Source of the DNA: Anthoceros angustus
Lineage: Eukaryota; Plantae; Anthocerotophyta
Length of the DNA: 64,000 nt
Direction of reading: 5' to 3'
Assembly (NCBI GenBank): GCA_010909165.1
Contig: VJWM01000192.1
Span: 62,001 to 126,000 of the forward strand
The notes beneath the pieces were generated by a model. The model was not told the origin of the DNA, did no database searches, and saw only the letters and a list, made by a program, of their open reading frames with translations. Position 1 is the stretch's first letter, and every line of letters starts with the position of its first letter. This document shows, piece after piece, positions 4,326-64,000 of this stretch. A program made the position numbers and the translations under genes.

Positions 4326-7300
4326 TCATCTTGCGAACGTCTCCGTATCATCTGTAGACGACAAGAAACAACTTGTCAGCATGAAGTTCTGCAACTGACA
4401 GCACAGCATTCAACATTATCCACATATTGAGTATTGCATTGCCATGACCAGACACATAAAGCAACCACCGACAAGGCCAGAGAAAGAAAGTATACCTGCG
4501 ACGTTTTGACCTTCACCAATCTGTTTCAGCCCTTCAACGACCTCGCTGGTGGGTGCATCCTGCTCTTCAGCTCCAGAAGCAGGCTTCTTCCTAAACAGTG
4601 AGCTCACACTCTCAGAGACCCGACCCACAATACCTTTGCTGTCTGGGTCAGAGGCGCTGGCAGGGCTGCGTGGTGAGGAACCACCCAAGCTCAACCCTCC
4701 CAGAGTGTCGGTGATCTTCTGGGACAATGCCTTGTCATGCTCGTCAGGATGGAACCTGTCTGCAGCAGCATCCTTGGTGGAAACAACATACCCCTTGGCT
4801 TGCCCAACACCTTGACTCACCTTCTGTGTGAAGGGCACGGCATCACCACCAACCTCAGTGCCGGTGCCAGTGCCTGGCAGTGAGTCACCTAGTGAGGTTG
4901 GCAGTTCAGACTCTTCAGTCACAGGCTTCGGGGAAGATGAGTAGCCCAGTTTCGATGCAATCGCGTCCTTGGCAGCATATGCAGATTCCTGCACCCTCTG
5001 TGTCACAGGCTTCTGCTCTGCAGTGGCAGTCGTAGTAGCACTAGTGTCCTGGACACCGGCCCCGTACCCTATCTTGCCTGTCACCGCACCCAGTGTCTCC
5101 TTGGCCTTCTCAGTCCATGTTTTACCAGCCTCGGTTGCTGAGCCTGTGGACTCTCTGGCTGCTTCGGAGGACTCAGTTGTAGCGTCCGCGGCCTTCTCCT
5201 TCGTTCCATACAGAGCTCCAACGGCAACCTCCTTGGCGTAGTTCAGCCCTTCCTTCGCACGCTCGATGTACGGCTTCTGCTCCTCACCAGAAGCAGCAGT
5301 CAATTCAGTGGTGCCATACTCGTTTTCTGTACCAGTATTTGCTGTAACTGCTCCCAGAACCTTGTCCCTGGCATTGTAAATCCCCTCACTGGCACGTTCG
5401 GTGAAAGGCTTCTGCTCCTCAGCAGCAGGAGTATTTCCGGACAGAGCTCCTACCACGCTGTCCTTGGCATTGTAGGTGCCTTCTGTGGCACGCTCTGTAA
5501 AAGGCTTCTGCTCCTCAGCAGCAGTAGTATCTCCGGACACAGCTCCTACCGCCCTGTCCTTGGCATTGTAGATGCCTTCTGTGACACGCTCTGCAAAAGG
5601 CTTCTGCTCCTCAGCAGCAGAAGTATCTCCGGACACAGCTCCTACCACCCTGTCCTTCGCGTTGTAGATGCCTTCAGTGGCACGCTCTGTAAAAGGCTTC
5701 TGCTCATCAACTCCAGCCTCTGTAAAGGGCTTCTGTTCATCAACTCCAGACTCCGCTCCCGTGCTGCCCGCCACAACACCCACCAGCCTGTCCTTCGCAT
5801 TGTAGATGCCTTCGGTTGCACGCTCTGTCAATGGCTTCTCCTTCTCCTGGTACTCCACCTCTCCAATGTGGTGCTTCGCTGTCTCCGCCGACCCTGCTGC
5901 AGCAGCTGCCTCCTTCAGACGTTCGGAGAAAGGAAGATCATCCTTTTCAGCCGCTGCGATCCCCTTGAATTCCTGCAGCAGACACGAAGACGTATGTCTA
6001 TGTCATCACACCATCATGAAAAGCACCATGGCCGAAGGAACCTCACAATTGTCATATAGACTCACATGCTGGTCACTGCTGAACGGTCCCTGGACGGCAG
6101 AATCGTGGAGCAGCGTATGAGGGACCTGCTCTCCACTCAACCCACCGAGATCACGAGAAATTCCAGCTGACTCCTGACCTGCAAAATCGATCCAAACACA
6201 ACAGTCAGTAACATTTCATTCTCCTTTCCTACCCCACACTACTCAGTAATTCCCCACTCCCGAATCCCACACCTTCAACTGAAGGCCCAGTCTCCTGCCT
6301 ACTCCGGGTGTCCTCCTCGGAGGGAAGGGACGCAGCACCATAGAAATACTGCGTGGGAACAGCCTGCAAAGTGTCCTCCGGGCCGTCGTTTCTAAACGGA
6401 CTGATAAACTTACTACCATCACCATCTCCCTGGACCGAGGACTCAGACACCTGCCATGCCCTATCACCCACTGCAGGAGCGGCAGGATCTGGCACCCCAC
6501 GCTCGGAGCTAATACCTTCCTGCCCAGACACAGCCCTGGGGAACGAATCCCCCCCGTGCACCGCAGGGGCTGTAGCATCGGACTGCAAGCCTACATCCAA
6601 CAGCATGAAAACATGCCCCCTCGATTAGACTCACATCCGATGCTCCACACATCCACACATCACTGCACCCGGCTTCCCGACCCCACTTCCCCACCCATCT
6701 CCACTCTACACTCCACTCAAAACCGCTTCCACCCATCCAGCAACCTCCAGAATTCAGCTTCAAATTTAAAACCGGCCGCTACCTGCAGGATTCGAGGTGA
6801 CGCTGAACTGCTCAGCCAAAGGGTCCCCGTGTTGCTTGGGCAGCTGGGCGTACTCTCCCTGCAGAACCCACAACCCAAATGACATAAATCTCTCTGCCCG
6901 TTCCAGCCACCACTTCATCCACACGTCCAGCCCACAAACCCACCTGCGAGGCAGCCTCGCTCTCGTCTTCACTGGACGACGCAGAGCTGGACACATTCTC
7001 CAACCCGCGGTCAGTGGTACCGCCAGTGCTGTCCTTGTCGGAGGTCCGGGTGTGGAGCTCCTTCTTCACCTTGGTCTTGAGCTTGGAAGTCTTGTCCTTG
7101 ATCTTCGACATGAAGGACGACGACTTCTTCCCACTGGGGCTCTGCACCTCCGGCGCGCCGGTGTCCAGCTTCTGCTGCGACTCTGCAGACGTCAAACCCG
7201 TCGCTCGCTCAGCTGATTCAACAGCGCCCACAACCAACATTCACTCAAATTCTCCAACCCACCACCCGCATTGCACCACCCTTCCACGAATTCCACCACC

Positions 7301-9235: not shown

Positions 9236-12148
9236 ATGGCCGCAGGATGGCAACCGGATGCCTTGTGGACCCAACAAATTGTTGGCTGCACAGGGATTCT
9301 ACGAGGAGCTCCCGCTCACCTCACGTTATGGAGTCAATTGCTGGCAAACAAGCAAGCCTGGAGAAGCAGCAGTGAAAGGAGCCCAGCAGTTCAAACAAAA
9401 TGTGTGGCTGGGGAAGGAATTCTCAGCGATGCTCGTCGGCAGGAGCAGGAGCTCTTGTGGCGACATTTGTTTCTGGACCCTACAATGTGGTGGGATGTCA
9501 GGCGAGGTAAGAGGAGCTCCCGTTCGCCTGACTTTCGGCGGAAGGGGTCCGGCGAGGTCCTCTGGTTAGACAGCTTTCTTAAGCCAGCGTGGGTGGATGA
9601 GCAGCTTGTTGCTTTGGATGTGCAGATGGGGGATGTTGCATCTCCTTCCAAGTCGAGATTTTGGGATAAGGCTGAGTCTGGAAGGCCTGCTGGATCCGAG
9701 ATGGGCGTAACGGCTGACACTGTGAGCACGTTATGTGAGCAGGGAAGGCTTACTGAGGCTGTTGGAGCCCTGGAATTCCTGGTGGCGACAGACTGTCCTG
9801 TTTCTCAGTCTCTGTTTTATACTGTGCTAAAACAGTGTGCAGCTAAGAAGGATCTGGTTCTTGGGCGACAAGTGCATGATCTGTCTGTCAAGCTTGGGTA
9901 CGACTCAAATGCATTCTTGGGGAATCATATCCTGCGCATGTATGCATGTGTGGGGAGGTTACCAGAGGCCATGGATGTGTTCACCAGGGTGGGCAAGCCA
10001 AGTGTCTTCATGTGGTCTTCCATCATCTCCGCACATGCCAAGCATGGGAAACCTAATGAAGCCATACAACTTTACCATGAGATGCGAAGCTCAGGCGTGA
10101 ATGGGGATGCTCACGTCTTTGTAGCTGCGCTTCAAGCTTGTGCACTTGCTGTTGACTTGGAGTCTGGTAGAAGAGTGCACTCTCATGTGATGAACAGTGG
10201 CATTCCTCCTAACTTGTTTATTGGAAACTCCCTGGTGGATATGTATGCAAAATGCGGGGACCTGGACGAGGCATCACGGGTTTTTGACAGTTTGGGCACG
10301 AAGGATGTGGTGACATGGAATGCCCTGATTGCTGGGTATGCCAAACACGGGCTTGGTCAACAGGCGCTTCTTCTCTACGGAGAGATGGAGAAAGATTGCC
10401 TCGTTCTGGCTGACAGTGTTACTTTTGTCTGCCTTCTGAATGCCTGTGCCAGCGCTGGTGCCTTACAGCTGGGGAGGCAGCTGCACTCAGAGATTGTGGG
10501 AAGAGGACTGCTAGGAAGTGACATCCTGGTGGGGAACTGCCTGGTGGACATGTATGCAAAATGTGGCGAATTGAAAGATGCACACCAGGTCTTTAGCAGT
10601 TTGGTCAAGAAAAATGTGGTGACTTGGACTGCCCTGATGTCTGGGTATGTAAATCATGGGCTGGCTCTAGAGGCCCTTGTTCTGTACGAAGAAATGGAGC
10701 AAGAGGGCCTGATTCTGGCTAACCATGTCACCTTTGCTTGCCTTCTGAAGGCCTGTGCAAGTGCTGGTGCCTTGCAGAAGGGCAGGGAGCTGCACTCACA
10801 GATTGTGGAAAGAGGACAGCTACAAGGTGGCATTGTGGTGGGCAACTCCCTGGTGGACATGTATGCAAAATGCGGGGAACTGGAAGAGGCACGCAGGGTT
10901 TTTGACAGTTTGGCGAGAAAGGATGTGGTGACATGGACGTCCCTGATAGCTGGGTATGAACAGCAAGGGCTCTATCAAGAGGCTCTTGTTCTGTATGAGC
11001 AAATGGAGCAGGAGGGCCTGATTCTGGCTGACAGTTTTACTTTTGCTTGCCTGCTGAGGGCCTGTGCAAGCGCTGGTGCTTTGCAGAAGGGCAGGCAGCT
11101 GCACTCACAGATTGTGGAACGAGGACAGCTGCAAAGCGACATTGTGGTGGGCAACTCCCTGGTGGACATGTATGCAAAATGTGGGGAACTGGAAGAGGCA
11201 CGCAGGGTCTTTGACAGTTTGGCGAGAAAAGATGTGGTTACCTGGACAGCCCTGATAGCTGGATGTGGTACTTGTGATGAAGGTCACAAAGCACTAGCTT
11301 GCTTTGAGGAAATGTTGGATGCCGGTATTCAGCCTAACGATGTTACCTTTACTTGCCTCTTAGTAGCATGCAGTCATGCAGGACTGGTGAATGAGGGTCG
11401 CAAGCACTTTGATGCCATGGTCGAACAGCATGGCATGAAGCCTGCTACAGAGCACTACAATTGCATGGTTGATCTTCTTGGGCGTGCAGGCCATATAGAT
11501 GAGGCAGAGAAGATGCTACTATCGTGTAAGAGCCAAGACAATGTTGTGGGCTTGACGTCTTTGCTGAATGCCTGCAAAAGTCACGGGGATATAGAGAGGG
11601 CGAGGCGATGCTTTGAAAGTCTTTCCAGACTAGACCCTCATCAGGCATCAGGATACGTGCTCATGGCCAATATCTATGCAGATGCAGGCAGGTGGACAGA
11701 TGTGGACAGGATTGAAACACAGAGAATAGTAGCAAGAGCCAACAAGAGACCTGCGGTGGCGGGCATTGAGGTAAACAAGCAGATCCACACATTTGTGGTG
11801 GGAGAACACAGAGAGGATGTTTCATTTAAGGTAGAGAGCGTGAATGCACGTCTAAAAGAGGAAGGGGGTCACATACCACACACAAATTTAGTGTTGAAGC
11901 CATTGTCTGAAATGGAAAAGGAAGATATGCTTTGCGGGCATGCTGAAAAGCTAGCTCTGGCATTTGGTCTCTTGAACACCGCGAGTGGCGAACCTCTGCT
12001 GGTTACCAAGAATCTACGCATGTGCAATGACTGCCACAGTTCCACCCAGATCATGTCAAGGGTTGAGAACAGAGACATTGTTGTAAGGGATGGATATCGT
12101 GTGCATCGATTCTCAGCTGGTTCTTGCAGTTGTAAGGGTCGACCATGA
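9236..12148 (+). CDS. PPR1: PLS-class PPR RNA-editing factor with N-terminal OSB-like PDF motif and complete DYW:KP domain ending GRP (putative U-to-C editor)
   Basis: About 17 P/L/S motifs, E1/E2, KRPAVA (KP-type box), HAEKLALAFGL, LRMCNDCH, HRFSAGSCSCKGRP*. Intronless 970-aa ORF. Confidence 0.93.
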   Translation: MAAGWQPDALWTQQIVGCTGILRGAPAHLTLWSQLLANKQAWRSSSERSPAVQTKCVAGEGILSDARRQEQELLWRHLFLDPTMWWDVRRGKRSSRSPDFRRKGSGEVLWLDSFLKPAWVDEQLVALDVQMGDVASPSKSRFWDKAESGRPAGSEMGVTADTVSTLCEQGRLTEAVGALEFLVATDCPVSQSLFYTVLKQCAAKKDLVLGRQVHDLSVKLGYDSNAFLGNHILRMYACVGRLPEAMDVFTRVGKPSVFMWSSIISAHAKHGKPNEAIQLYHEMRSSGVNGDAHVFVAALQACALAVDLESGRRVHSHVMNSGIPPNLFIGNSLVDMYAKCGDLDEASRVFDSLGTKDVVTWNALIAGYAKHGLGQQALLLYGEMEKDCLVLADSVTFVCLLNACASAGALQLGRQLHSEIVGRGLLGSDILVGNCLVDMYAKCGELKDAHQVFSSLVKKNVVTWTALMSGYVNHGLALEALVLYEEMEQEGLILANHVTFACLLKACASAGALQKGRELHSQIVERGQLQGGIVVGNSLVDMYAKCGELEEARRVFDSLARKDVVTWTSLIAGYEQQGLYQEALVLYEQMEQEGLILADSFTFACLLRACASAGALQKGRQLHSQIVERGQLQSDIVVGNSLVDMYAKCGELEEARRVFDSLARKDVVTWTALIAGCGTCDEGHKALACFEEMLDAGIQPNDVTFTCLLVACSHAGLVNEGRKHFDAMVEQHGMKPATEHYNCMVDLLGRAGHIDEAEKMLLSCKSQDNVVGLTSLLNACKSHGDIERARRCFESLSRLDPHQASGYVLMANIYADAGRWTDVDRIETQRIVARANKRPAVAGIEVNKQIHTFVVGEHREDVSFKVESVNARLKEEGGHIPHTNLVLKPLSEMEKEDMLCGHAEKLALAFGLLNTASGEPLLVTKNLRMCNDCHSSTQIMSRVENRDIVVRDGYRVHRFSAGSCSCKGRP

Positions 12149-13752: not shown

Positions 13753-16700
13753 CTAAAAAACTGATGGACAATTGTGACGATCGACGGGGACTCTCAGACC
13801 TTTTGCAGTAATTTGGGGGGTACACTTAGCCATGTTAAACAGCATATTTCCGATAACCAGCTTCTCGCTGTGCTCACAATAAGTTTCCTTTCTACTACAA
13901 GATACCTCTCCTGGTGATGATTCAAGATGAGACACATATCCGTCTTTCTTCATTTTGGCAAATCTCTGCTGTAGCCTCGCTTGACTGTGGGGATGCTTGT
14001 CCTCCCCAACCAAAAAGCTGTGGACCAGTCCGTCATCGTCCGTCCACCAGCTCTGACCTGGGTTCTTCCAGGCTCTGATCCTCTTTCTCCTTGACTGTAT
14101 CTTCTCTGCCTGTGTCCACATCTGGGCACTGATGTAAAGGTTCGACATCAACAAATATGCTGCACCATCCTGCTTGTCTAGCTTCACTGCTTCATTGAAA
14201 GCATGGCGTCCCACCTCGACATTGCTCCAAATTCTACAAGCACCCAACAGAGTTTGCCAAACCGCAGAACTAGGAAGTACAGGCATAGTGCTTATAAAGA
14301 CCAATGCCTCATCCAGTTGCCCTGCACGGCCCAGAAGATCCACCATGCATGTGCAGTGGTTCTCTGTGGGAGTTACGCCGTAGTGTCTGCTCATAGCTTC
14401 AAAGTACTTCCGCCCCTCGTTCACTAGACCTGCATAACTGCACACTATTAATATGCTAAGGAATGTGATGCTGTTCGGCTGTATGCAATCCTCTTTCATT
14501 CTACGGACCAAGTCGAACACTGCTTCACTGTCTCCTTGACAAGTATAGCCTGCAAGCAGTACATTCCAGAGAACAACATCTCTTTCTGGCAATGCATCAA
14601 AGACCTGTTGTGCATCAACCATGCTCCCGCACTTCCCATACATGTTAATCAAACTGCCGGCTACAATCAAATCAGCTTGCAGCCCTTGTTCTACAATCTG
14701 TGCATGTAGCTGCCTTCCCAGATGCAAACCTGCCACATTTGCACATGCCTGTAGGAGGCACGTGAATGTTACAGAATCAGGGATGGGCATGCCTTCTTCT
14801 TGCATAGCTCTGTAAAGATGCAGGGCTTCCTGACCCATACCCTGCTGGGAATACCCTGCTATCATGGCATTCCACGCCACAACACTTTTTTGGCCAAGTC
14901 TGTCAAACACACTCTGAGCATCTTGCAAACTGCCACACTTTGCATACATGTTCACCAAACTGCTGGCTATAAAGGCATCAGTTTGATATCCTCGGTCTTT
15001 GATTTCCAAATGAAGCTGCTTCCCGTTCTCCAAGGCCAGGGTACCCACACTTGCACATGCCTGCAGGAGGCACACAAACGTCATGGAATCTGGTCCAACC
15101 ATGCCTTCTCCTTGCATTGCAGCGTAGAGACAAAGGGCTTCCTTCCCCATCCCTTGCTGGGAGTACCCTGCTATCATGGCATTCCACACCGCCACATCCT
15201 TTTGACCAAGTCTGTCAAATACTCCCTGCGCATCTTCCAAGCTGCCACATTTTACAAACATATTTACCAGACTGTTGGCTAAAAACACGTCAGCTTCATA
15301 TCCTTGTTTTCTGATTTGAGCATGAAGATGCTTCCCCTTCTCCAGCGCACGGATGCCCACACTGGCACATCCCTGCAGGAGACATCCAAATGTCACGGAA
15401 TTGGGTGAGGCCATGCCTTCAAACACTCTCTGAGCATCTTCCAAGCTGCCACACTTTGCATACATGTTCACCAAACTATTCGCCACAACCACATTAAGTT
15501 GATGTCCTTCTTCTATGATTTGTGCATGAAGCTGCTTTGCCATCTGCAATGCTGGTGCGCCCACACTTGCACACGCCTGCAGGAGGCACACAAATGTCAC
15601 AGAATCTGGTATAGCCATACCTTCCTCTTGCATAGCACTGTACAGGCAAAGAGCTTCTTGCCCCATTCCCCGCTGCGAATACCCTGCTATCATGGCAGTC
15701 CAGGTCACAACATCCTTCTGACCAAGCCCAGCAAACACTCTCTGGGCGTCTTCCACACTGCCACACTTTGCATACATGTTCACCAGACTATTCCGTACAA
15801 ACTCATCAGCTAAATGTCCTCCGTGTTCAATTTGGTCATGAAGGTCCTTCCCTGTCTTCAGCGCTGTGGTGCCCACACAAGCACATGCCTGCAGGAGGCA
15901 CACGAATGTCAGAGAATCAGGTACAGCCATGCCTTCTTCTTGCATGGCACCGTAGAGGTGAAGTGCTTCCTGTCCCATACCCTGCTGGGAATACCCTGCT
16001 ATCATGGCAGTCCATGTCACGACATCCTTTTGCCCAAGTCCATCGAACACTCTCTGAGCATCTTCCAAGCTGCCACACTTGGCATACATGTTCACCAAAC
16101 TGTTGGCTACAAACACATCAGCTTCAAGTCCTCTTCCTATGATTTGCCCATGAAGCTCCTTCCCCTTCTCCAACGCCAGGGTGCCAACACTAGCACATGC
16201 CTGCAGGAGGGAAATGAATGTCACCGAATTGGGTAGAGCCATGCCTTCTTCTTGCATAGCACTGTATAGACGAAGGGCTTCCAGGTACATACCCCGCTGG
16301 GAATACCCTGCTATTATTACAGTCCAGGTAACCACATCCTTCTGACCAAGTCCATCAAACACTCTCTGAGCGTCCTCCAAGCTGCCACACTTGGCATACA
16401 TGTTCACCAGACTGTTGGCCACAAACACATCGCCTTCATGTCCTCTTTCCCTGACCTGCACATGAACCTGCCTCCCCTGCTCCAGAGCTAGGGTGCCTAC
16501 ACTCGCACAAGCCTGCAGGAGGCACACAAATGTCATGCAATTAGGTACAGCCATGCCTTCATCTTGCATAGCTCTGTACAGATCCAGGGCTTTCTGCCCC
16601 ATACCTTGCTGAGAATATCCTGCTATCATAGCAGTCCATGTCACCACATTCTTCTGATCCAGGCCGTCAAACACTCTTTGAGCGTCCCCCAAGCTGCCAC

Positions 16701-17751
16701 ACTTTGAATACATGTTCACCAAACTATTACAGACATGCAAATCCGGCTCAACGCCAATGGCTAACAAATCAGCATGCACCTGCTGCCCAGATTTCAGATC
16801 GGATCCCCTTGCACAAGCCTGAAGAGCTGCCACAAACACATGGCCATCTGGGTTTGCACTCGACCTCCGCATCCGATGATACAGCTCTATGGCCTGCTTG
16901 TCCTCTCCATGTTTAACATGCGCAGAAATCATAGAAGACCACATGAACGCATCCGGTTCAACAACACCATCAAACACCTCCATCGCTTCTTTCAGCCTGC
17001 CATGAAAAGAATACATCCGTAATATGTGATTGCACAGGAAAGTGTCCGCCTGGTACCCTTTTCTCACCGCCAAAGCATGAACACGGCTGCCCAAAACAAG
17101 ATCCTTCTTCAGCACACATCTCTTCAGCAGAGCATAAAATACAAATCTGGAAATACAAGTACCCGTCTGCACTAGAACTTCCAAAGCTTCAACAGCCTGA
17201 GCGAGATGGCCCTCATTACACAACTTGCTCACAGTTTCAGGTGTCACGCCCCGATCGTCGCCTGCAGGCCTGCAACGCCCAGGACTATCCGGCAAGCTCC
17301 TGTCGGACCCACAACGACTCATCCCCAGGTCCAGAGCAGCCAGCTGCGCATCCACCCAACCTGGCTTGTAGAAGTTGTCTAACCAGAGAACCTGTTGGGA
17401 CTGCTTGTGTCGGAAGTCAGGGGAGCTATGGCTTTTCTTATTTTGCCTGTGATCCCACCAAAGTGAGGGGTTACCAAAGAATTGCCGCCACAAATTCTCC
17501 TGGCGACCACGTTCCCAGGATCTGTCCCCAGTGACAGATTCTCTTCCACCGGCTTCATTTCTTGTAAGGGTGCCACTGATGCACCTCTCGCATTGTGTCC
17601 CGGTAGAGTGCTGTTTCTTTAATGTCAGATGAGCAGGAGCTCCTCCTGCAAAACCCGTCAGCCCACCACATGGTTGGGTCCACGAACACAGTCCCCACAA
17701 TGAATCTCCTTGCCCTTTTCTTGACCCAATATCAACGCTCAGGACAGCCAT
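13753..17751 (-). CDS. PPR2: long PLS-class PPR protein (about 28 motifs) with N-terminal PDF motif and degenerate, truncated DYW:WW domain
   Basis: 1332-aa ORF. WKNPGQSWWTDDDGLVHSF (WW-type PG box), CEHSEKLV retained, CxxC replaced by LRVPVDRH, premature stop. Confidence 0.92.
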   Translation of the reverse strand: MAVLSVDIGSRKGQGDSLWGLCSWTQPCGGLTGFAGGAPAHLTLKKQHSTGTQCERCISGTLTRNEAGGRESVTGDRSWERGRQENLWRQFFGNPSLWWDHRQNKKSHSSPDFRHKQSQQVLWLDNFYKPGWVDAQLAALDLGMSRCGSDRSLPDSPGRCRPAGDDRGVTPETVSKLCNEGHLAQAVEALEVLVQTGTCISRFVFYALLKRCVLKKDLVLGSRVHALAVRKGYQADTFLCNHILRMYSFHGRLKEAMEVFDGVVEPDAFMWSSMISAHVKHGEDKQAIELYHRMRRSSANPDGHVFVAALQACARGSDLKSGQQVHADLLAIGVEPDLHVCNSLVNMYSKCGSLGDAQRVFDGLDQKNVVTWTAMIAGYSQQGMGQKALDLYRAMQDEGMAVPNCMTFVCLLQACASVGTLALEQGRQVHVQVRERGHEGDVFVANSLVNMYAKCGSLEDAQRVFDGLGQKDVVTWTVIIAGYSQRGMYLEALRLYSAMQEEGMALPNSVTFISLLQACASVGTLALEKGKELHGQIIGRGLEADVFVANSLVNMYAKCGSLEDAQRVFDGLGQKDVVTWTAMIAGYSQQGMGQEALHLYGAMQEEGMAVPDSLTFVCLLQACACVGTTALKTGKDLHDQIEHGGHLADEFVRNSLVNMYAKCGSVEDAQRVFAGLGQKDVVTWTAMIAGYSQRGMGQEALCLYSAMQEEGMAIPDSVTFVCLLQACASVGAPALQMAKQLHAQIIEEGHQLNVVVANSLVNMYAKCGSLEDAQRVFEGMASPNSVTFGCLLQGCASVGIRALEKGKHLHAQIRKQGYEADVFLANSLVNMFVKCGSLEDAQGVFDRLGQKDVAVWNAMIAGYSQQGMGKEALCLYAAMQGEGMVGPDSMTFVCLLQACASVGTLALENGKQLHLEIKDRGYQTDAFIASSLVNMYAKCGSLQDAQSVFDRLGQKSVVAWNAMIAGYSQQGMGQEALHLYRAMQEEGMPIPDSVTFTCLLQACANVAGLHLGRQLHAQIVEQGLQADLIVAGSLINMYGKCGSMVDAQQVFDALPERDVVLWNVLLAGYTCQGDSEAVFDLVRRMKEDCIQPNSITFLSILIVCSYAGLVNEGRKYFEAMSRHYGVTPTENHCTCMVDLLGRAGQLDEALVFISTMPVLPSSAVWQTLLGACRIWSNVEVGRHAFNEAVKLDKQDGAAYLLMSNLYISAQMWTQAEKIQSRRKRIRAWKNPGQSWWTDDDGLVHSFLVGEDKHPHSQARLQQRFAKMKKDGYVSHLESSPGEVSCSRKETYCEHSEKLVIGNMLFNMAKCTPQITAKGLRVPVDRHNCPSVF

Positions 17752-17875
17752 CGCTCGTCATCAAAACTCACAGATCCGCCCCAACCGTGTATGGACTCTG
17801 TGATACATTCCATAAAACCTTTCTCTGTAACTGGTCCGTAGTCTCTCCTCTGTAGGCTCCCTCTTCCTGCAAGCA

Positions 17876-20800
17876 ATGAAAGTCGGGAGCTTTGCAATTG
17901 AGTCACGCACAGGTCAAGGGGACCCGTTGTTGGGACAGTTCTCGTGGACCCAGGGAAATGGTAATTCAGGAATTGCAGGAAGAGCCTCTTGGGGCCAGAC
18001 TTCGAGGAACCAACCGTCGGCACAGAACCAATGCGGGAGGTCCAGTACCTTGTCAAGGAAGCCAGCCCGTCCAAGAGGATGTCTGGCTGGCGGCAGGTGC
18101 TCCAGTGAGGAGAAATTGAGGCGACAACATTCTCTGGATTCCACGCTTAACAGGCAGAATAAGAAGAGCCGTCGTTCTCCTGACTCCCAGAGCCACCAGA
18201 CACCAGAGGTCCTCCGGTTAAACAATCTGCAGAAGCCAGCTTGGGTGGATGCACACATTGCTGTTCTGGACAGTGTGATGGGTCGTGGTGCCTCTGACAG
18301 GAGCTTACAGGATGATCCTGGCCCTCGCAGGCCTGCAGGTGACGATAGGGTCGTGACGGCTGAAACCGTGAGCAGGTTATGTGATGCGGGCCTTCTCACT
18401 GAAGCTGTCGAGGCTCTGGACGTTCTGGTGCACACAGACCGTTGTATTTCCAAATCTCTCTTTTACACAGTCCTGAAGAAATGTGTAGCGAAGAAGGATG
18501 TCGTTTTGGGGAGCCGTGTTCATGCTTTCGTGGTGAGAAAAGGGTACCAGGCAGATACGTTCCTGTGCAATCACATCCTACGGATGTATGCTTCTCATAA
18601 CAGGTTGCAAGACGCGATAGAGGTGTTTGATGTTGTTCGTGAACCGGATGCGTTCATGTGGTCTTCTATAATTTCTGCGCATGTTAGACATGGAGAGGAC
18701 AAGCAGGCCTTAGAGCTGTATCATCGCATGCGTAGGTCCAGGGTGAAGCCAGATGGTCATGTGTTTGTGGCAGCTCTTCAGGCTTGTGCAAGGGGATCAG
18801 ACTTGAAATCTGGGCAGCAGGTGCATGCTGATGTCGTGTCCAGTGGGGTTCAGCCTCATATGTTTGTCTGGAACTGCTTGGTAAACATGTATGCAAAGTG
18901 TGGTAGCTTGAAAGAGGCTCAAAAAGTGTTTGACGGACTGTGTCAGAAAGATGTGGTGACATGGACTACAATGATAGCTGGATATTCTCAGAAGGATATG
19001 GGGCGGGAAGCCCTCACTCTCTACAGTGCTATGCAAGAGGAAGGCTTGACTGTACCAAATTCCATCACATTTGTGTCGCTCCTGCAGGCGTGCGCAAGTG
19101 TGGGCACCCTGGCGTTGGAGACGGGGAAGCAGCTTCATGCGCAACTTCGAGTAGCAGGACATGAAGCTGATGTGGCTGTGGCCAACAGCTTAGTCAACAT
19201 GTATGCTAAGTGTGGCAGCTTGGAGGACGCTCATAGAGTCTTTGTTGGACTTGGGCAAAAGGATGTGGTGACGTGGACCACAATGATAGCAGGATATTCC
19301 CAGCAGGGCATGGGCCAGGAGGCCCTCTGTCTCTACAGTGCTATGCAAGAAGAAGGAATGTCTGTACCCAATTCTGTAACATTTGTTTGCCTCCTGCAGG
19401 CATGTGCAAGTGTGGGAAACTTGGCGTTGGAGAACGGGAAGCAGCTTCATGCACAAATCAGTGAAGGAGGACATGAAGCTGATATGTTTGTAGCCAACAG
19501 TTTGGTGAACATGTATGCAAAGTGTGGGAGCTTGGAAGATGCTCAGGGGGTGTTTGATGGACTTGGTCAAAAAGATGTGGTCACATGGACTGCACTGATA
19601 GCAGGGTACTCCCAGCAGGCCATGGGCCCTAAAGCCCTTCATCTTTACACTGCTATGCAAGAAGAAGGCATGGCTGTACCCAATTCTGTGACATTTTTGT
19701 GTCTCCTGCAGGCATGTGCAAGTGTTGGCACCCTGGCTCTGGAGAAGGGTAAGCAGCTTCATGCCCAAATCAGAAGAGGAGGATACCAGGCTGATGTGTT
19801 TGTATGCAACAGCTTGGTGAACATGTATGCAAAGTGTGGCAGTCTGGAAGACGCTCAGAGAGTGTTTGATGGACTTAGGCAAAAGGATGTTGTGACATGG
19901 ACTGCTATGATTGCGGGATATGCCCAGCAGGGTATGGGGGTTGAAGCCCTTAGTCTCTACAGTGCTATGCAAGAGGATGGGGTGGCTATACCCGATTCGG
20001 TGACCTTCGTGTGCCTCCTGCAGGCCTGTGCAAGTGTGGGCAGCTCGGCATTGGAGAAGGGGCAGCAGCTTCATGCTCAGCTCAAAGAAGGAGGCCATCA
20101 AGCTGACGTGGTCGTAGCCAACAGTCTGGTGAACATGTATGCAAAGTGCGGCAGCCTGGAGGATGCTCAATGTGTGTTTGATGGACTTAATCAAAAAGAT
20201 GTGGTAACGTGGACTGTGATGATAGGAGGATATTCCCAGCAGGGCAGGGGGTTGGAAGCCCTAAGTCTCTACAGTGCTATGCAAGAAGATGGCATGGCTG
20301 CACCCGATTCTGTGACATTTGTGTCCCTCTTGCAGGCATGTGCATGTGCGGGATCCCCAGCATTGGAGAAGGGGAAACAGCTTCATTTGGAAATCAAACA
20401 ACGCGGACATCAAGCTGATGGGTTTATAGCAAACAGTTTGGTAAACATGTATGCAAAGTGTGGTAGCCTGGAGGACGCTCAGAGAGTGTTTGACGGAATT
20501 GGTCAAAAGGATGTGGTGGCCTGGACTGCGATGATTGCAGGATATTCCCAGCAGGGCAGGGCCCAGGAAGCCCTTCTTCTCTACAGTGCTATGGAAGAGG
20601 AAGGGGTGGCTATACCAGATTCTGTTACTTTTGTATACCTCCTCCAGGCATGTGCAGGCATGGGCACCTCAGCGTTAGAGAAGGGGAAACAACTTCATGT
20701 GCAAATAAGGGAACGAGGATTTCAAGCTCATGCGTTGGTAGCCAACAGTTTGGTCAACATGTATGCAAAGTGTGGCAGTTTTGAAGATGCACAGAGAGTG

Positions 20801-22237
20801 TTTAAATGCATGGCCGTACCCGAACCCATGACATTTGTGTGCCTCCTGCAGGCATGTGCAAGTGTCGGCACCGCCGCCTTGGAGACGGGGAAGCAGCTTG
20901 ATGTGCAAATCAGAGAGCGAGGACTTCAAGGTGATGTGTTTGTAACTAATAGTTTGGTGAACATGTACACAAAGTGTGGCAGTTTGGATCATGCTCAGAG
21001 AGTGTTTGATGGACTTGATAAAAAAGATGTAGTGACATGGACTGCCTTGATAGCAGGGTATTCCCAGCAGGGCATGGGGCGAAAATCCCTTCTTCTCCAC
21101 AGTGCTATGCTAGAGGAAGGCATGACTGTTCCCGATTCTGTGACATTTGTTTGCCTCCTGCAGGCATGTGCAAGTGTGGGCAGCCTGGCGTTGGAGAAGG
21201 GAAAGCAGCTTCATGCGCAGATCAAGCGAGGAGGACATCAAGCTGATGTGGTTGTAGCTAACTGTTTGGTGAACATGTATGCAAAGTGTGGGAGTCTGGA
21301 AGATGCTAAGAGAGTATTTGATGGACTGGGCCAAAAGGACGTGGTAACGTGGAATGCCATGATAACAGGATACTCTCAGCAGGGTATGGGGCAAGAGGCC
21401 CTTAGTCTTTATAGAGCTATGCAAGAGGGATGCATAGCTGTGCCCGATTCGGTGACATTTGTGTCCCTTCTACAGGCATGTGCAGATGTGGCAGCTTTGA
21501 ATGTGGGAAGGCGGATACATGCCCAGATTGTAGAACAAGAGCTTCAATTAGATTTGTTTGTAGCTGGCAGTCTGATTAACATGTATGGAAAGTCCGGGAG
21601 CATGGTTGATGCACAGCAGGTGTTTGATTCGTTGCCTGAACGAGACGTTGTCATCTGGAATGCACTGATCGGTGGCTACACATGTCAAGGAGCTACCGAA
21701 GTGGTCCTGGACTTGGTGACGAGTATGAGGGAGGATGGCATACGCCCAAACGGTGTCACATTCCTCAGTGCATTGACTGTGTGCAGTCATGCCGGTTTAG
21801 TGGACAAAGGGTGGGAGTACTTTGAGACTATGAGCAGACAATTTGGCATCAGTCCCACAGAGAACCACTACACATGCATGGTGGATCTCCTGGGTCGTGC
21901 AGGGCAACTGGATGAGGCACTACACTTAATAAGGACAATGCCTATACTCCCTAATACTGCGGTTTGGCATACTCTGTTGGGTGCCTGTAGAAAGTGGAGC
22001 AACGTGGAGGTGGGACTCCATGCTTTCAGGGGAGCAGTCAAGCTAGACAGGCAAAATGGCGCAGCATATGTGTTAATGTCAAACATTTACATGGGTGCCG
22101 AGATGTGGGAACGAGCAGAGCAGATGCAGGCCAGGAGAAAACGAATCAAGGCATGGAAGACGCCAGGTCAGAGCTGGTGGACAGACGAGGACGGACTGGT
22201 GCATAGCTTTCTGGTTGGGGATGACAAGCATTCCTAG
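17876..22237 (+). CDS. PPR3: long PLS-class PPR protein (about 34 motifs), E+ type, stopping just after a WW-type PG box; degenerate PDF motif
   Basis: 1453-aa ORF with 312-bp P-L-S triplet periodicity; ends WKTPGQSWWTDEDGLVHSFLVGDDKHS*. Confidence 0.92.
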   Translation: MKVGSFAIESRTGQGDPLLGQFSWTQGNGNSGIAGRASWGQTSRNQPSAQNQCGRSSTLSRKPARPRGCLAGGRCSSEEKLRRQHSLDSTLNRQNKKSRRSPDSQSHQTPEVLRLNNLQKPAWVDAHIAVLDSVMGRGASDRSLQDDPGPRRPAGDDRVVTAETVSRLCDAGLLTEAVEALDVLVHTDRCISKSLFYTVLKKCVAKKDVVLGSRVHAFVVRKGYQADTFLCNHILRMYASHNRLQDAIEVFDVVREPDAFMWSSIISAHVRHGEDKQALELYHRMRRSRVKPDGHVFVAALQACARGSDLKSGQQVHADVVSSGVQPHMFVWNCLVNMYAKCGSLKEAQKVFDGLCQKDVVTWTTMIAGYSQKDMGREALTLYSAMQEEGLTVPNSITFVSLLQACASVGTLALETGKQLHAQLRVAGHEADVAVANSLVNMYAKCGSLEDAHRVFVGLGQKDVVTWTTMIAGYSQQGMGQEALCLYSAMQEEGMSVPNSVTFVCLLQACASVGNLALENGKQLHAQISEGGHEADMFVANSLVNMYAKCGSLEDAQGVFDGLGQKDVVTWTALIAGYSQQAMGPKALHLYTAMQEEGMAVPNSVTFLCLLQACASVGTLALEKGKQLHAQIRRGGYQADVFVCNSLVNMYAKCGSLEDAQRVFDGLRQKDVVTWTAMIAGYAQQGMGVEALSLYSAMQEDGVAIPDSVTFVCLLQACASVGSSALEKGQQLHAQLKEGGHQADVVVANSLVNMYAKCGSLEDAQCVFDGLNQKDVVTWTVMIGGYSQQGRGLEALSLYSAMQEDGMAAPDSVTFVSLLQACACAGSPALEKGKQLHLEIKQRGHQADGFIANSLVNMYAKCGSLEDAQRVFDGIGQKDVVAWTAMIAGYSQQGRAQEALLLYSAMEEEGVAIPDSVTFVYLLQACAGMGTSALEKGKQLHVQIRERGFQAHALVANSLVNMYAKCGSFEDAQRVFKCMAVPEPMTFVCLLQACASVGTAALETGKQLDVQIRERGLQGDVFVTNSLVNMYTKCGSLDHAQRVFDGLDKKDVVTWTALIAGYSQQGMGRKSLLLHSAMLEEGMTVPDSVTFVCLLQACASVGSLALEKGKQLHAQIKRGGHQADVVVANCLVNMYAKCGSLEDAKRVFDGLGQKDVVTWNAMITGYSQQGMGQEALSLYRAMQEGCIAVPDSVTFVSLLQACADVAALNVGRRIHAQIVEQELQLDLFVAGSLINMYGKSGSMVDAQQVFDSLPERDVVIWNALIGGYTCQGATEVVLDLVTSMREDGIRPNGVTFLSALTVCSHAGLVDKGWEYFETMSRQFGISPTENHYTCMVDLLGRAGQLDEALHLIRTMPILPNTAVWHTLLGACRKWSNVEVGLHAFRGAVKLDRQNGAAYVLMSNIYMGAEMWERAEQMQARRKRIKAWKTPGQSWWTDEDGLVHSFLVGDDKHS

Positions 22238-62052: not shown

Positions 62053-64000
62053 ATGGCCACAGTATGGCAACCGGACCCGTTGTGGACCCAACAAATTGGT
62101 GTGGGTACAGGGATTCTACCAGGAGCTCCCGCTCACCTCATCGTAGGGAGTCAACCCCTGGCAAACAAAGCCTCCAGGTGCAGCAGTGCAAGGAGCCCAG
62201 CACTTCCACTTCCGAGACAATGTGAGGGTCGGGACTGGTTTTCCAGCGATGGTCGTTGCCAGGAGCAGGAGCACTTGTGGCAACAATTTTTCCTGGACCC
62301 TACCATGTGGTGGGACAAAAGACGAGATAAGAAGAGCTCCCGTTCGCCTGATTTCCAGCGGAAGGGGTCCGGCGAGGTGCTGTGGTTAAACAACATGTTC
62401 AAGCCAGCTTGGGTTGATGAGCAGCTCGTTTCCTTGGATATGCAGATGGGCCATGGTGCCTCTCCTTCCAAGTCAGCTCTCCGGATAAGCCTGAACCTGG
62501 CAGGCATGCAGGATCGGAAATGGGCGTCGTAACGCCTGGAACCGTGAGCATGTTGTGTCAGCAGGGGAAGCTTTCTGAGGCCGTTGGAGCCCTGGAATCT
62601 CTGGCGGGCACAGACTCGGTTGTTTCTCAGTCTCTGTTTTACACTGTTCTAAAACTGTGTACAGCTAAGAAGGATTTGGTTGTGGGGCGACGAGTTCATG
62701 ATCTCACTGCCAAATTTGGGTACGAGTCATGCATACTTGAGGAATCATATCTTGCGCATGTATGCATGTGGAGGTAGGCTGCAGGAGGCCATGGATGTGT
62801 TCACCAGGGTGGGGAAACCAAATGTCTTCATGTGGTTCTCCATTATCTCTGCACATTCTAAGCACGGGAAACCTGATGAGGCCATACAACTGTACCATGA
62901 GATGCGTAGGTCAGGAGTGAAGGCGGATGCTCACGTCTTTGTAGCTGCCCTTCAAGCTTGTGCATTTGCCGACTTGGAATCTGGCAGAAAAGTGCACTGT
63001 GATGTGTGCACAGTGGCATTCCTACTAACTTGTTTGTTGGCAACTGCCTGGTGGACATGTATGCAAAATGTGGAACTGAAAGATGCACGCCAGGTTTTTG
63101 ACAGCATGGCCACAAGGATGTGGTGACATGGACGCCCTGATTGCTGGGTATGCACAGCAAGGGCTCGACATGAGGCACTTGTTGTGTATGGACAAATGGA
63201 GCAGGAGGGCTGCTTTTGGCTAACCATGTTACTTTTGTTTGCCTTCTGAAGGCCTGTGCAAGCACTGGTGCCTTACAGAAGGGCAGGCAGCTGCACTCAC
63301 AGATTGTCGAAAGAGGACTGCTGGATGATGTGGGCACCTGCCTGGTGGACATGTATGCAAAATGTGGTGAACTGGAAGATGCACGCCAGGTTTTTGACAG
63401 CATGGCCACAAAGGATGTGGTGACATGGACAGCGCTGATCGCTGGGTATGCACAGCAAGGACGCGGCCAAGAGGCGCTTGTTGTGTATGGACAAATGGAG
63501 CAGGAGGGCCTGCTTTTGGCTAACCATGTTACTTTTGCTTGCCTTCTGAAGGCCTGTGCAAGCACTGGTGCCTTACAGAAGGGCAGGCAGCTGCACTCAC
63601 AGATTGTCGAAAGAGGACTGCTGGATGACGTAGTGGTGGGCACCTGCCTGGTGGACATGTATGCAAAATGTGGTGAACTGGAAGATGCACGCCAGGTTTT
63701 TGACAGCATGGCCACAAAGGATGTGGTGACATGGAATGCCCTGATTGCTGGGTATGCACAGCAAGGGCTCGGCCAAGAGGCGCTTGTTGTGTATGGACAA
63801 ATGGAGCAGGAGGGGCTGATTTCAGCTAACCATGTCACTTTTGCTTGCCTTTTGAAGGCCTGTGCAAGCACTGGTGCCTTACAGAAAGGCAGGCAGCTGC
63901 ACTCACAGATTGTTGAAAGAGGACTGCTGGATGACATAGTGGTGGGCAGCTGCCTGGTGGACATGTATACAAAATGTGGTGAACTGGAAGATGCACGCCA
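62053..64000 (+). CDS. PPR4: close paralog of PPR1 (PDF motif plus PLS array), frameshifted in this sequence, continues beyond the window
   Basis: MATVWQPDPLWTQQ...LWQQFFLDPTMWWDKRRDKKSSRSPDFQRKGSGEVLWL; about 300-bp triplet repeats from 63100; several 1-2 nt indels from about 62500. Confidence 0.8.

Follow-up and report, generated by a model that had tools for sequence, protein, structure and literature searches.

In the usual depiction, a PPR editing factor consists of a transit peptide, a PPR array, E motifs and a DYW domain. Published editing-factor architectures (figure legend of PMC9459714) likewise carry a transit peptide alone ahead of the first PPR, and constructs routinely drop the region upstream of the PPRs; moss PPR56 stripped of all but 14 residues of that region edits efficiently in E. 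coli (PMC10482289). The PDF motif belongs to a different set of proteins and is known from Arabidopsis OSB1-4 (Zaegel et al. 2006, as summarised in PMC6963530, PMC4166229 and PMC6451138). The PDF motif of AtOSB1 suffices for ssDNA binding (PMC6963530), OSB1 and OSB2 prefer ssDNA over dsDNA or RNA (PMC4166229), AtOSB2 binds a 10-nt ssDNA overhang with a Kd of ~8 nM, and AtOSB2 and AtOSB3 are tetramers (PMC6451138).

At the locus described here, these two known elements, the PDF motif and the PLS PPR factor, occur in one polypeptide, as an OSB-type PDF on PPR editing-type proteins. In the literature that could be searched, including searches with literal motif strings, no published link of the PDF or of OSBs to PPR or DYW proteins was found, in line with a sequence-only reading of the locus that was aware of no functional description of the fusion. 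A 2026 kingdom-wide survey of editing-factor domain fusions contains neither the term "OSB" nor the term "ssDNA" (PMC13386178).

PDF modules in four PPR genes of the window

The window, that is, the whole 64,000-nt stretch of DNA that was analysed, holds four copies of the PDF, one of them eroded and the others intact, and every copy is within a long single open reading frame and N-terminal to a PLS-type PPR array. The motif spans ~51 aa with the signature W..FF..P..WWD.R..K....PDF..K.....LWL....P.WV, and the 51-aa cores of PPR1, PPR2 and PPR4 each contain the SPDF, WWD.R, LWL and P.WV elements by which a PDF is defined. An HMM built solely from the PDF motifs of SSB-domain proteins, i.e., those of OSB architecture (OSB-only HMM), was run on 1363 six-frame segments of the window and recovered the intact copies of PPR4 (E 4e-22), PPR2 (E 6e-22) and PPR1 (E 3e-20), bearing out the match to OSB PDF motifs that the sequence-only reading had proposed and had set as a check by HMM. 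The eroded copy in PPR3 scored E 1.5e-5 with a match confined to its C-terminal half, and the best non-PDF segment among the 1363 reached E ~0.9.

PPR1 (9236..12148, + strand) is a single uninterrupted ORF of 970 aa comprising a leader, the PDF module, a linker, a PLS PPR array, E1/E2 and a DYW domain, with Pfam matches to PPR, E_motif and DYW_deaminase. The leader (residues 1-61, 9236..9418, +) is disordered and poorly conserved, rich in Ser and Thr, with more basic than acidic residues, and is a putative organelle presequence. It is followed by the PDF module (residues 62-134, 9419..9637, +; conserved 51-aa core at 9455-9607), delimited by translation, the OSB-only HMM and AF2, and by a flexible linker from the PDF to the first PPR helix (residues ~135-154, 9638..9697, +). 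The PLS-type array with E1/E2 occupies 9698..11851 (+; Pfam PPR families, E_motif at residues 783-845), and the DYW deaminase domain, of the DYW:KP GRP subtype, occupies 11852..12148 (+; Pfam PF14432, E 2e-32, residues 878-968). This last region has KRPAVAG at the PG box position, GHAEKLA with HAE for HSE, CNDCH, and a C-terminal CSCKGRP. HAE and GRP are features of the DYW:KP, GRP subgroup of hornworts (PMC9478123), and the KPAxA-like box, the HAE and the terminal GRP of PPR1, assigned from sequence reading, place it in that subgroup and mark it as a candidate member of the U-to-C editor class.

The other three genes are less complete. PPR2 (13753..17751, - strand) is a 1332-aa ORF with an N-terminal PDF (51-aa core at 17341..17493, -, from translation and the OSB-only HMM), a long PLS array and an E motif. 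Its DYW is a degenerate remnant in which HSE is retained and CxxCH is gone; residual DYW similarity is weak (E 4e-4), and Pfam gave no DYW match in this gene. PPR3 (17876..22237, +), a 1453-aa ORF, is the head-to-head inverted duplicate of PPR2 within an inverted repeat and breaks off where the DYW region begins. Its PDF, located by correct-frame translation and alignment at 18107..18271 (+), has W8 changed to R, WWD deleted, PDF changed to PDS and LWL to LRL, so that hallmark W and F positions carry other residues and a single aromatic remains, versus 8-10 in the intact window copies. Since the PPR3 copy is nearly stripped of its hallmarks while its long ORF is still open, a gene can evidently survive, at least for a time, the loss of its module. 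PPR4 (62053..64000, +) is a PPR1 paralog with an intact 51-aa PDF core at 62275..62427 (+), found by six-frame scan; its first ORF ends at 62532, and three-frame reading shows that the array runs on through at least four frameshifts after 62529 and past the end of the window. Because of these frameshifts across the PPR array, PPR4 is probably a pseudogene.

The sequence-only reading had placed these motifs accurately on the whole. Translation reproduces exactly the peptides that it quoted for PPR1 at 9455-9620 (+) and PPR2 at 17340-17493 (-), and the PPR4 motif is the one seen in the six-frame scan; the eroded PPR3 motif is present too, but the coordinates 18115-18270 proposed for it lie one base out of frame. 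The label of PPR-DYW editors that it applied to all four genes holds for PPR1, the sole one of the four that combines a PLS array and E1/E2 with a DYW carrying HxE and CxxCH, but fails for the degenerate DYW of PPR2, the truncated PPR3 and the frameshifted PPR4.

Structure prediction with AF2 returned a pLDDT of 93.9 for the PDF motif alone, and in PPR1 the module is predicted as a helix-strand-strand-strand-helix unit of ~70 residues at pLDDT 90-97. In a model of PPR1 residues 1-330, the PDF and the PPR array both exceed 90, while the leader (residues 1-59) and the linker (residues 136-153) fall below 50, which agrees with the earlier placement of the motif between the targeting peptide and the first PPR. 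As modelled, the PDF module folds autonomously and is joined to the PPR superhelix by a disordered linker of ~20 residues. A PDB sequence search with the motif profile gave chance matches to LHC proteins alone (E>0.3), and a Foldseek search of the AF2 model against the PDB gave nothing below E 3.6; judged from the predicted fold, no solved structure resembles the PDF module. Between PPR1 and PPR4, dN/dS is 0.21 in the motif and 0.87 in the leader. The possibility that the motif is part of the transit peptide was rejected as improbable on its confident AF2 fold and low dN/dS, both unlike the adjoining leader.

Homology to OSB proteins and spread across land plants

A window profile made from the three intact copies was searched against 1.84 billion proteins and gave 783 matches at E<=1e-3. 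It matched proteins named by their source as OSB1, OSB2 or OSB3 at their C-terminal PDFs with E 1e-20 to 1e-25, for example a Populus OSB1-like protein (P0058) at residues 294-349 of 371 (E 5e-23). An SSB-like domain followed by 1-6 PDFs was present in 73 of the best 150 of the 783 matches, and the matches listed also include tandem PDF arrays of up to 13 copies and proteins without any other recognisable domain. All source-named matches among the best 150 of the 783 are from land plants, most of the 783 being without a name. Conservation of at least 89% was found at W8, P15, W18, D20, R22, K25, P31-D32-F33, K36, L42-W43, P50 and W52 in the PPR-attached and OSB-attached sets alike, and in either set the charge is net positive, with 7-9 aromatics in each 51 aa. 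By these sequence comparisons, the window motif and the OSB PDF motif are truly homologous. Chance similarity was considered and rejected on the reciprocal E-values of ~1e-20.

The PPR genes themselves are not OSB proteins. No SSB/OB domain was found in them; Pfam is empty upstream of the motif, where 61-67 residues are disordered, and PPR repeats follow it. Pfam searches of the four N-terminal regions at E<=10 returned no family at all, so the PDF is without a curated model. In a tree of PDF motifs, 37 of the 38 PPR-attached copies lie on the side of one branch that is free of OSB PDFs. The tree requires two changes of label, whereas shuffled labels require 24.7 on average. Support for the branch parting PPR-attached from OSB PDFs is weak (0.52), as expected from ~60 columns. 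The grouping of the sequences suggests a single origin of the PPR-attached PDFs, with the separating branch weakly supported.

We collected 47 PDF-PPR proteins, of which 18 end in a DYW domain (with tails DYW, GRP or DRH) and 16 have E-type ends. They come from Calypogeia, Sphagnum, Ceratodon, Selaginella, Diphasiastrum, Adiantum, Ceratopteris and Pteridium, so that E- or DYW-ended members occur in a liverwort, mosses, lycophytes and ferns, alongside relatives of the GRP/DRH (hornwort-like) type. Copy number is one to three per protein, some proteins having two or three in tandem, and the leader ahead of the PDF is 30-180 aa long. Gene annotations of ferns and lycophytes often begin inside the PDF module. 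A word-indexed protein search with the motif region only, for which the index is insensitive at 60 aa, returned none for PPR1 and one extra Ceratodon protein for P0209. An artefact of gene-model fusion was rejected, as the ORFs are uninterrupted in raw DNA at three separate loci and transcriptome ORFs of Pteridium carry both PDF and PPRs.

About 36 of the 120 best PPR1 homologs carry a PDF, including 16 of 21 in Diphasiastrum, 4 of 5 in Calypogeia, 3 of 3 in Sphagnum and 1 of 1 in Ceratodon, and none of the 11 seed-plant homologs sampled does. The earlier statement that the motif does not ordinarily belong to PLS-DYW architecture is thus correct for the seed plants sampled but not for non-seed plants. 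As far as these sequences reach, the combination of PDF and PPRs is an old one, and it is widely distributed among bryophytes, lycophytes and ferns. The PDF is a mobile module that is no longer peculiar to OSBs, and it occurs in OSB proteins, in arrays of PDFs alone and on PPR proteins, which makes at least three contexts.

Candidate roles of the module

Given its homology to the OSB motif, we lean, with modest confidence, towards a role for the PDF of PLS PPR editing-type proteins as an accessory, sequence-non-specific anchor for single-stranded nucleic acid, with ssDNA preferred. On this view, RNA-editing-type PPR proteins of the PLS class would have gained the PDF at their N-terminus; the leader would be removed after import, and the module would remain on the mature protein, anchoring single-stranded nucleic acid without sequence specificity at the 5′ end of the PPR tract. 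From OSB biochemistry, the preferred ligand may by analogy be ssDNA that lies open in transcription bubbles or organelle nucleoids, and such anchoring would gather the editing factor near nascent transcripts as they emerge; a closely related alternative would be that the PDF binds, more weakly, the transcript immediately 5′ of the PPR footprint. The module would be an accessory with no part in catalysis. Editing by moss PPR56 minus its upstream residues (PMC10482289) suggests by analogy that an N-terminal module is not required for catalysis as such; it also suggests that the N-terminal region is dispensable for target recognition as well as catalysis, which counts against this main role, as does the open PPR array that PPR3 retains with its PDF eroded. 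Whether the ligand in PPR proteins is ssDNA, RNA or protein, we infer from homology alone. The sequence-only reading had put forward, as hypotheses, both a tether to nucleoids or transcription bubbles and a deaminase directed to ssDNA.

By the established polarity of PPR-RNA binding, the 5′ side of the RNA lies towards the N-terminal end of the tract, and the PDF is predicted to sit at this end on its flexible linker, a geometry that also suits an RNA-binding helper, in which the module would contact the transcript non-specifically 5′ of the PPR footprint and raise affinity or on-rate, as a cis counterpart of trans-acting helpers. The aromatic and basic surface composition of the PDF is in keeping with such a helper, as is the finding of PDF-PPRs in non-seed plants only, MORF helpers being restricted to seed plants (PMC13386178). 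We hold this role to be possible but doubtful, because OSB1 and OSB2 favour ssDNA over RNA (PMC4166229) and because N-terminal PPRs, and by extension upstream contacts, add little to target selection (PMC10482289).

A protein-protein or oligomerisation element, which would dock the factor to OSB or nucleoid proteins or join editing factors as dimers without touching nucleic acid, seems to us quite unlikely. The tandem arrays and PDF-only proteins among the matches listed are typical of interaction repeats too, and AtOSB2 and AtOSB3 are tetrameric (PMC6451138), but ssDNA binding is ascribed to the PDF motif itself (PMC6963530), OSB tetramerisation is not mapped to the PDF, and conservation of the motif is centred on W, F, K and R, residues that typically stack on bases or contact phosphates.

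We are still less inclined to see in the PDF a relic or dispensable leader element of little present function, possibly cut off with the presequence on import. This would fit the loss of hallmark residues in PPR3 with its PPR ORF kept, the lack of a PDF in the sampled seed-plant homologs, and editing in E. coli without N-terminal regions (PMC10482289). Such a relic would hardly keep its key residues 89-100% conserved over liverwort, moss, lycophyte, fern and hornwort-type proteins, nor be present in two or three tandem copies in some PPRs; the low dN/dS relative to the adjoining leader and a confidently predicted fold, unlike that of a transit peptide, also speak against it.

Organelle genomes of these plants keep unedited bases that are corrected at the RNA level. 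It is scarcely credible that the PDF aims the DYW deaminase at ssDNA, with organelle DNA edited or mutated instead of, or besides, RNA, even though the PDF is an ssDNA-binding module in OSBs (PMC6963530, PMC4166229, PMC6451138) and bacterial DYW-like deaminases such as SsdA work on ssDNA (abstracts of PMC12494967 and PMC11789416): the PDF and the DYW stand at opposite ends of a 700-1200-residue PPR tract, and the E-ended PDF-PPRs, together with PPR2 and PPR3, which are without a functional DYW, indicate that the PDF is not tied to a deaminase.

Returning to the anchor with ssDNA preference, the presence of a PDF, from a family with nanomolar ssDNA binding, on many C-to-U and candidate U-to-C factors of non-seed land plants suggests a physical link of organelle DNA or the nucleoid to RNA editing. 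In its most far-reaching form, which we consider unlikely, the PDF would be an ancestral, built-in accessory of land-plant editing factors, an ssDNA tether at active nucleoids that served co-transcriptional editing in bryophytes, lycophytes and ferns and was lost in the seed-plant lineage as MORFs took over. If this were true, every heterologous editing construct so far would have lost a short, transferable and structurally new single-stranded-binding fold. The module might also improve engineered PPR editors.

Comparison with described systems

OSB and PPR PDFs are alike in length (~50 aa), in the signature W..F..P..WWD.R..K....PDFKHK.....LWL....P.WV and in a variable copy number, which is 1-5 in OSBs (PMC13393729) and 1-3 in PPRs. 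They differ in setting, since the PDFs of OSBs lie C-terminal to a degenerate OB/SSB-like fold, whereas each window PPR has one PDF, N-terminal to a PLS array and with no OB fold. They differ also at F12, which is conserved in 93% of PPR-attached PDFs and 36% of OSB PDFs. The position and partner of the PDF, its separate, weakly supported grouping in the tree and the F12 difference are why we do not count the window genes as OSB proteins.

Relative to PLS-class editing factors as published, with only a transit peptide before the first PPR (figure legend of PMC9459714), the window PPRs add a PDF. The PLS array and E1/E2 are common to PPR-E and PPR-DYW editing factors and PPR1, which also has a full DYW.

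Accessory domains are found on other PPR proteins, including PPR-SMR, OTP51 with LAGLIDADG and PRORP with NYN. Maize PPR4, which bears an N-terminal RRM (PMC9459714), is alike in principle, combining a PPR tract with an independently folded nucleic-acid module. All of these are P-class proteins with Pfam-recognised domains, whereas the window proteins are PLS-class and carry an apparently plant-specific PDF without a Pfam model or a solved structure. With the MORF/RIP proteins the likeness may be one of function, by analogy an accessory that aids substrate engagement by PLS PPRs; MORF/RIP, found only in seed plants (PMC13386178), are proteins in their own right and of unrelated sequence, whereas the PDF is fused in cis and was found in non-seed plants only.

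Identity of the N-terminal motif

A Pfam search of the N-terminal regions of the four window genes returned no model for the PDF motif, the ~51-residue Pro-Asp-Phe motif known from plant organellar OSB proteins, and homology was therefore tested directly by profile searches. The peptides quoted in the sequence-only reading for PPR1 and PPR2 are exact translations of 9455-9620(+) and 17340-17493(-), and a six-frame scan of the window placed the third intact copy, that of PPR4, at 62275-62427(+). The eroded PPR3 copy is real as well, but had been set one base out of frame; its correct frame starts at 18107. All four copies lie upstream of a PPR array within a long open-reading frame, listed as 9236-12148(+) for PPR1 (970 aa), 17751-13753(-) for PPR2 (1332 aa), and 17876-22237(+) for PPR3 (1453 aa), while PPR4, in the region 62053-64000(+), begins at 62053 and continues past the window end.

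Searching 1.84 billion representative proteins with a profile built from the three intact copies gave 783 matches at E ≤ 1e-3. The OSB architecture, in which one to six C-terminal motif copies come after an SSB-like domain, was found in 73 of the best 150 of these, and the named proteins among the matches listed were OSB1, OSB2, OSB3 or "organellar single-stranded DNA binding protein 3"; a Populus OSB1-like protein (P0058), for example, matched with an E-value of 5e-23 at residues 294-349 of 371. In the reverse direction, an HMM built from 160 motif instances taken only from SSB-containing proteins recovered the intact window copies (E = 4e-22, 6e-22, and 3e-20), together with PPR3's eroded one (E = 1.5e-5), with no match below E = 0.9 in the rest of the window. 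The consensus of PPR-attached and OSB-attached motifs is near-identical, and in each set conservation is 89% or higher at W8, P15, W18, D20, R22, K25, P31-D32-F33, K36, L42-W43, P50, and W52 (motif alignment columns). By these reciprocal profile matches and common conserved columns, the window motif is assigned to the OSB PDF motif, as first proposed.

Two other kinds of profile match were observed: tandem arrays of up to 13 PDF copies without any other recognisable domain (P0001 from Kingdonia, with 13, P0002-P0004, P0007, and P0009), and a Coptis protein (P0037) in which an SSB-like region and three PDFs are joined to a kinesin motor, probably a merged gene model.

Distribution and origin of the PDF-PPR fusion

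The fusion is not private to the A. angustus genome. Of the 150 top-scoring matches among the 783, 16 are PPR proteins bearing one to three PDFs at the N-terminus, and the motif is present in about 36 of the 120 best PPR1 homologs. The named sources are the liverwort Calypogeia fissa, the mosses Sphagnum and Ceratodon, the lycophytes Selaginella and Diphasiastrum, and the ferns Adiantum, Ceratopteris, and Pteridium, and as the Pteridium sequences are transcriptome ORFs, the fusion is transcribed. The motif was absent from all 11 seed-plant proteins in the PPR1 homolog list (Cryptomeria, Ginkgo, Telopea, Centaurea). Among 47 collected PDF-PPR proteins, 18 have a DYW domain, with DYW, GRP or DRH tails, and 16 end in E motifs, the remainder being truncated models.

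In ferns, lycophytes, and mosses, many annotated PPR models start in or at the PDF (residues 1-7) or hold only its C-terminal half, as in P0104 (Selaginella), P0114 (Ceratopteris), P0237 and P0196 (Adiantum), and P0259, P0278, and P0217 (JGI). Automated annotation appears to clip true N-termini, and the fusion is probably more frequent than the annotated models indicate.

A tree built from 140 motif instances placed 37 of the 38 PPR-attached copies on one side of a single branch, a side holding no OSB PDFs, and two label changes were needed compared to a mean of 24.7 with shuffled labels; support for the branch was weak (0.52), as expected from only ~60 columns. The pattern is most simply read as one ancient recruitment of a PDF to a PLS PPR gene, early in the evolution of land plants, followed by expansion with the family.

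Architecture of the four window genes

PPR repeats and E motifs were detected by Pfam in PPR1, PPR2, and PPR3, and the DYW deaminase domain, among these three, in PPR1 only, so that the description of the genes as PPR-DYW editors is strictly true for PPR1 alone. In the PPR1 domain, 11852-12148(+), KRPAVAG replaces the PG box, HAE replaces HSE, and the C-terminus is GRP, features that assign it to the GRP subgroup of DYW:KP and mark it as a candidate U-to-C editor. This subgroup is described as a hornwort variant, and U-to-C editing has been demonstrated for it in designer form (PMC9478123). The nearest relatives of PPR1 end in GRP or DRH and likewise carry the PDF, so that the domain type and these relatives together point to a hornwort as the probable source of the window. 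The PG box is normal in PPR2 (KNPGQSWW) and PPR3 (KTPGQSWW), indicating that the module goes with both types.

The other genes depart from the PPR-DYW description in different ways. PPR2 ends early in a degenerate DYW, 13753-14100(-), that retains HSE (CEHSEKLV), with VPVDRHNC at the lost CxxCH zinc site, and may be an E+-type factor dependent on a DYW supplied in trans. The PPR3 reading frame ends where the DYW region begins. PPR2 (-, start 17751) and PPR3 (+, start 17876) form a head-to-head inverted duplication with only 124 bp separating the two start codons; its arms, 16802-17450 and 18150-18798 (within 16802-18798), are 82% complementary. The PDF is kept in PPR2, and in PPR3 its hallmark residues are gone. 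PPR4, a close paralog of PPR1, is a probable pseudogene, since at least four frameshifts are needed to read through its PPR array. Its PDF core is intact with a low dN/dS against PPR1 (0.21 in the motif, 0.87 in the leader), a pattern pointing to either gene conversion or recent decay.

Long antisense ORFs opposite the PPR arrays, 19190-20194(-) and 62858-63964(-), are not likely to be genes and were set aside as repetitive by-products of PPR repeat coding sequence. Elsewhere in the window, a 480-aa ORF at 4416-5858(-) consists of EQKPFTERATEGIYNAKD-type repeats of ~35 aa, has weak Pfam matches to HSP9/12 and the LTI65 repeat, and resembles LEA or stress-protein genes, and a 369-aa ORF at 49143-50252(-), with tandem blocks of QDEERQVK[SF]PKPAG (six) and HSDELVEP (seven), has no match in Pfam.

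Fold and proposed function of the module

A confident AlphaFold2 model of the motif from 52 aligned sequences (pLDDT 93.9) has three short strands flanked by a helix on either side. Neither a sequence search of the PDB nor a Foldseek comparison of the model with the PDB found a relative, leaving the fold without a solved representative. In a model of PPR1 residues 1-330, built with 33 homologous N-termini, the leader (residues 1-59, pLDDT < 50) and a linker (136-153) are disordered, and the PDF module between them (62-134, pLDDT 90-97) and the PPR array after the linker are ordered. Leaders ahead of the motif in the homologs span 30-180 residues, are Ser/Thr-rich, and hold more basic than acidic residues, which fits a putative presequence.

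The established properties of the PDF motif are those known from OSB proteins. The PDF motif of AtOSB1 suffices for ssDNA binding (PMC6963530), OSB1 and OSB2 prefer ssDNA over dsDNA or RNA (PMC4166229), and AtOSB2 binds a 10-nt overhang with a Kd of ~8 nM (PMC6451138). Given that the conserved aromatic and basic residues are retained in the PPR-attached copies, the most economical inference is that these would keep the same activity. On this basis, we propose that the module would remain on the mature protein after import and act, at the 5′-facing end of the PPR tract, as a flexible anchor that binds single-stranded nucleic acid non-specifically, most likely retaining the editing factor on the ssDNA of nucleoids undergoing transcription. 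Alternatively, it might grip the transcript upstream of the PPR footprint. The module would be accessory rather than catalytic: moss PPR56 edits in E. coli after removal of all but 14 residues upstream of its PPRs (PMC10482289), and PPR3 has lost the PDF hallmark residues yet keeps a long open PPR array. Ranked below both, as less probable, are a protein-interaction module, a dispensable relic or a segment removed together with the presequence, and a device aiming the deaminase at ssDNA.

No link of the PDF motif or domain, or of OSB, to DYW or pentatricopeptide proteins was found in the searchable literature, and the motif strings are printed in no paper within it. Neither "OSB" nor "ssDNA" occurs in a kingdom-wide survey from 2026 of domain fusions among editing factors (PMC13386178), a 2026 study of the OSB family demands an OB fold plus a PDF in each protein and leaves PPRs unmentioned (PMC13393729), and a Physcomitrium PPR review draws a transit peptide alone ahead of the repeats (PMC9459714). 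Within this searchable literature, PDF-PPR is a previously unremarked domain architecture composed of two well-known parts.
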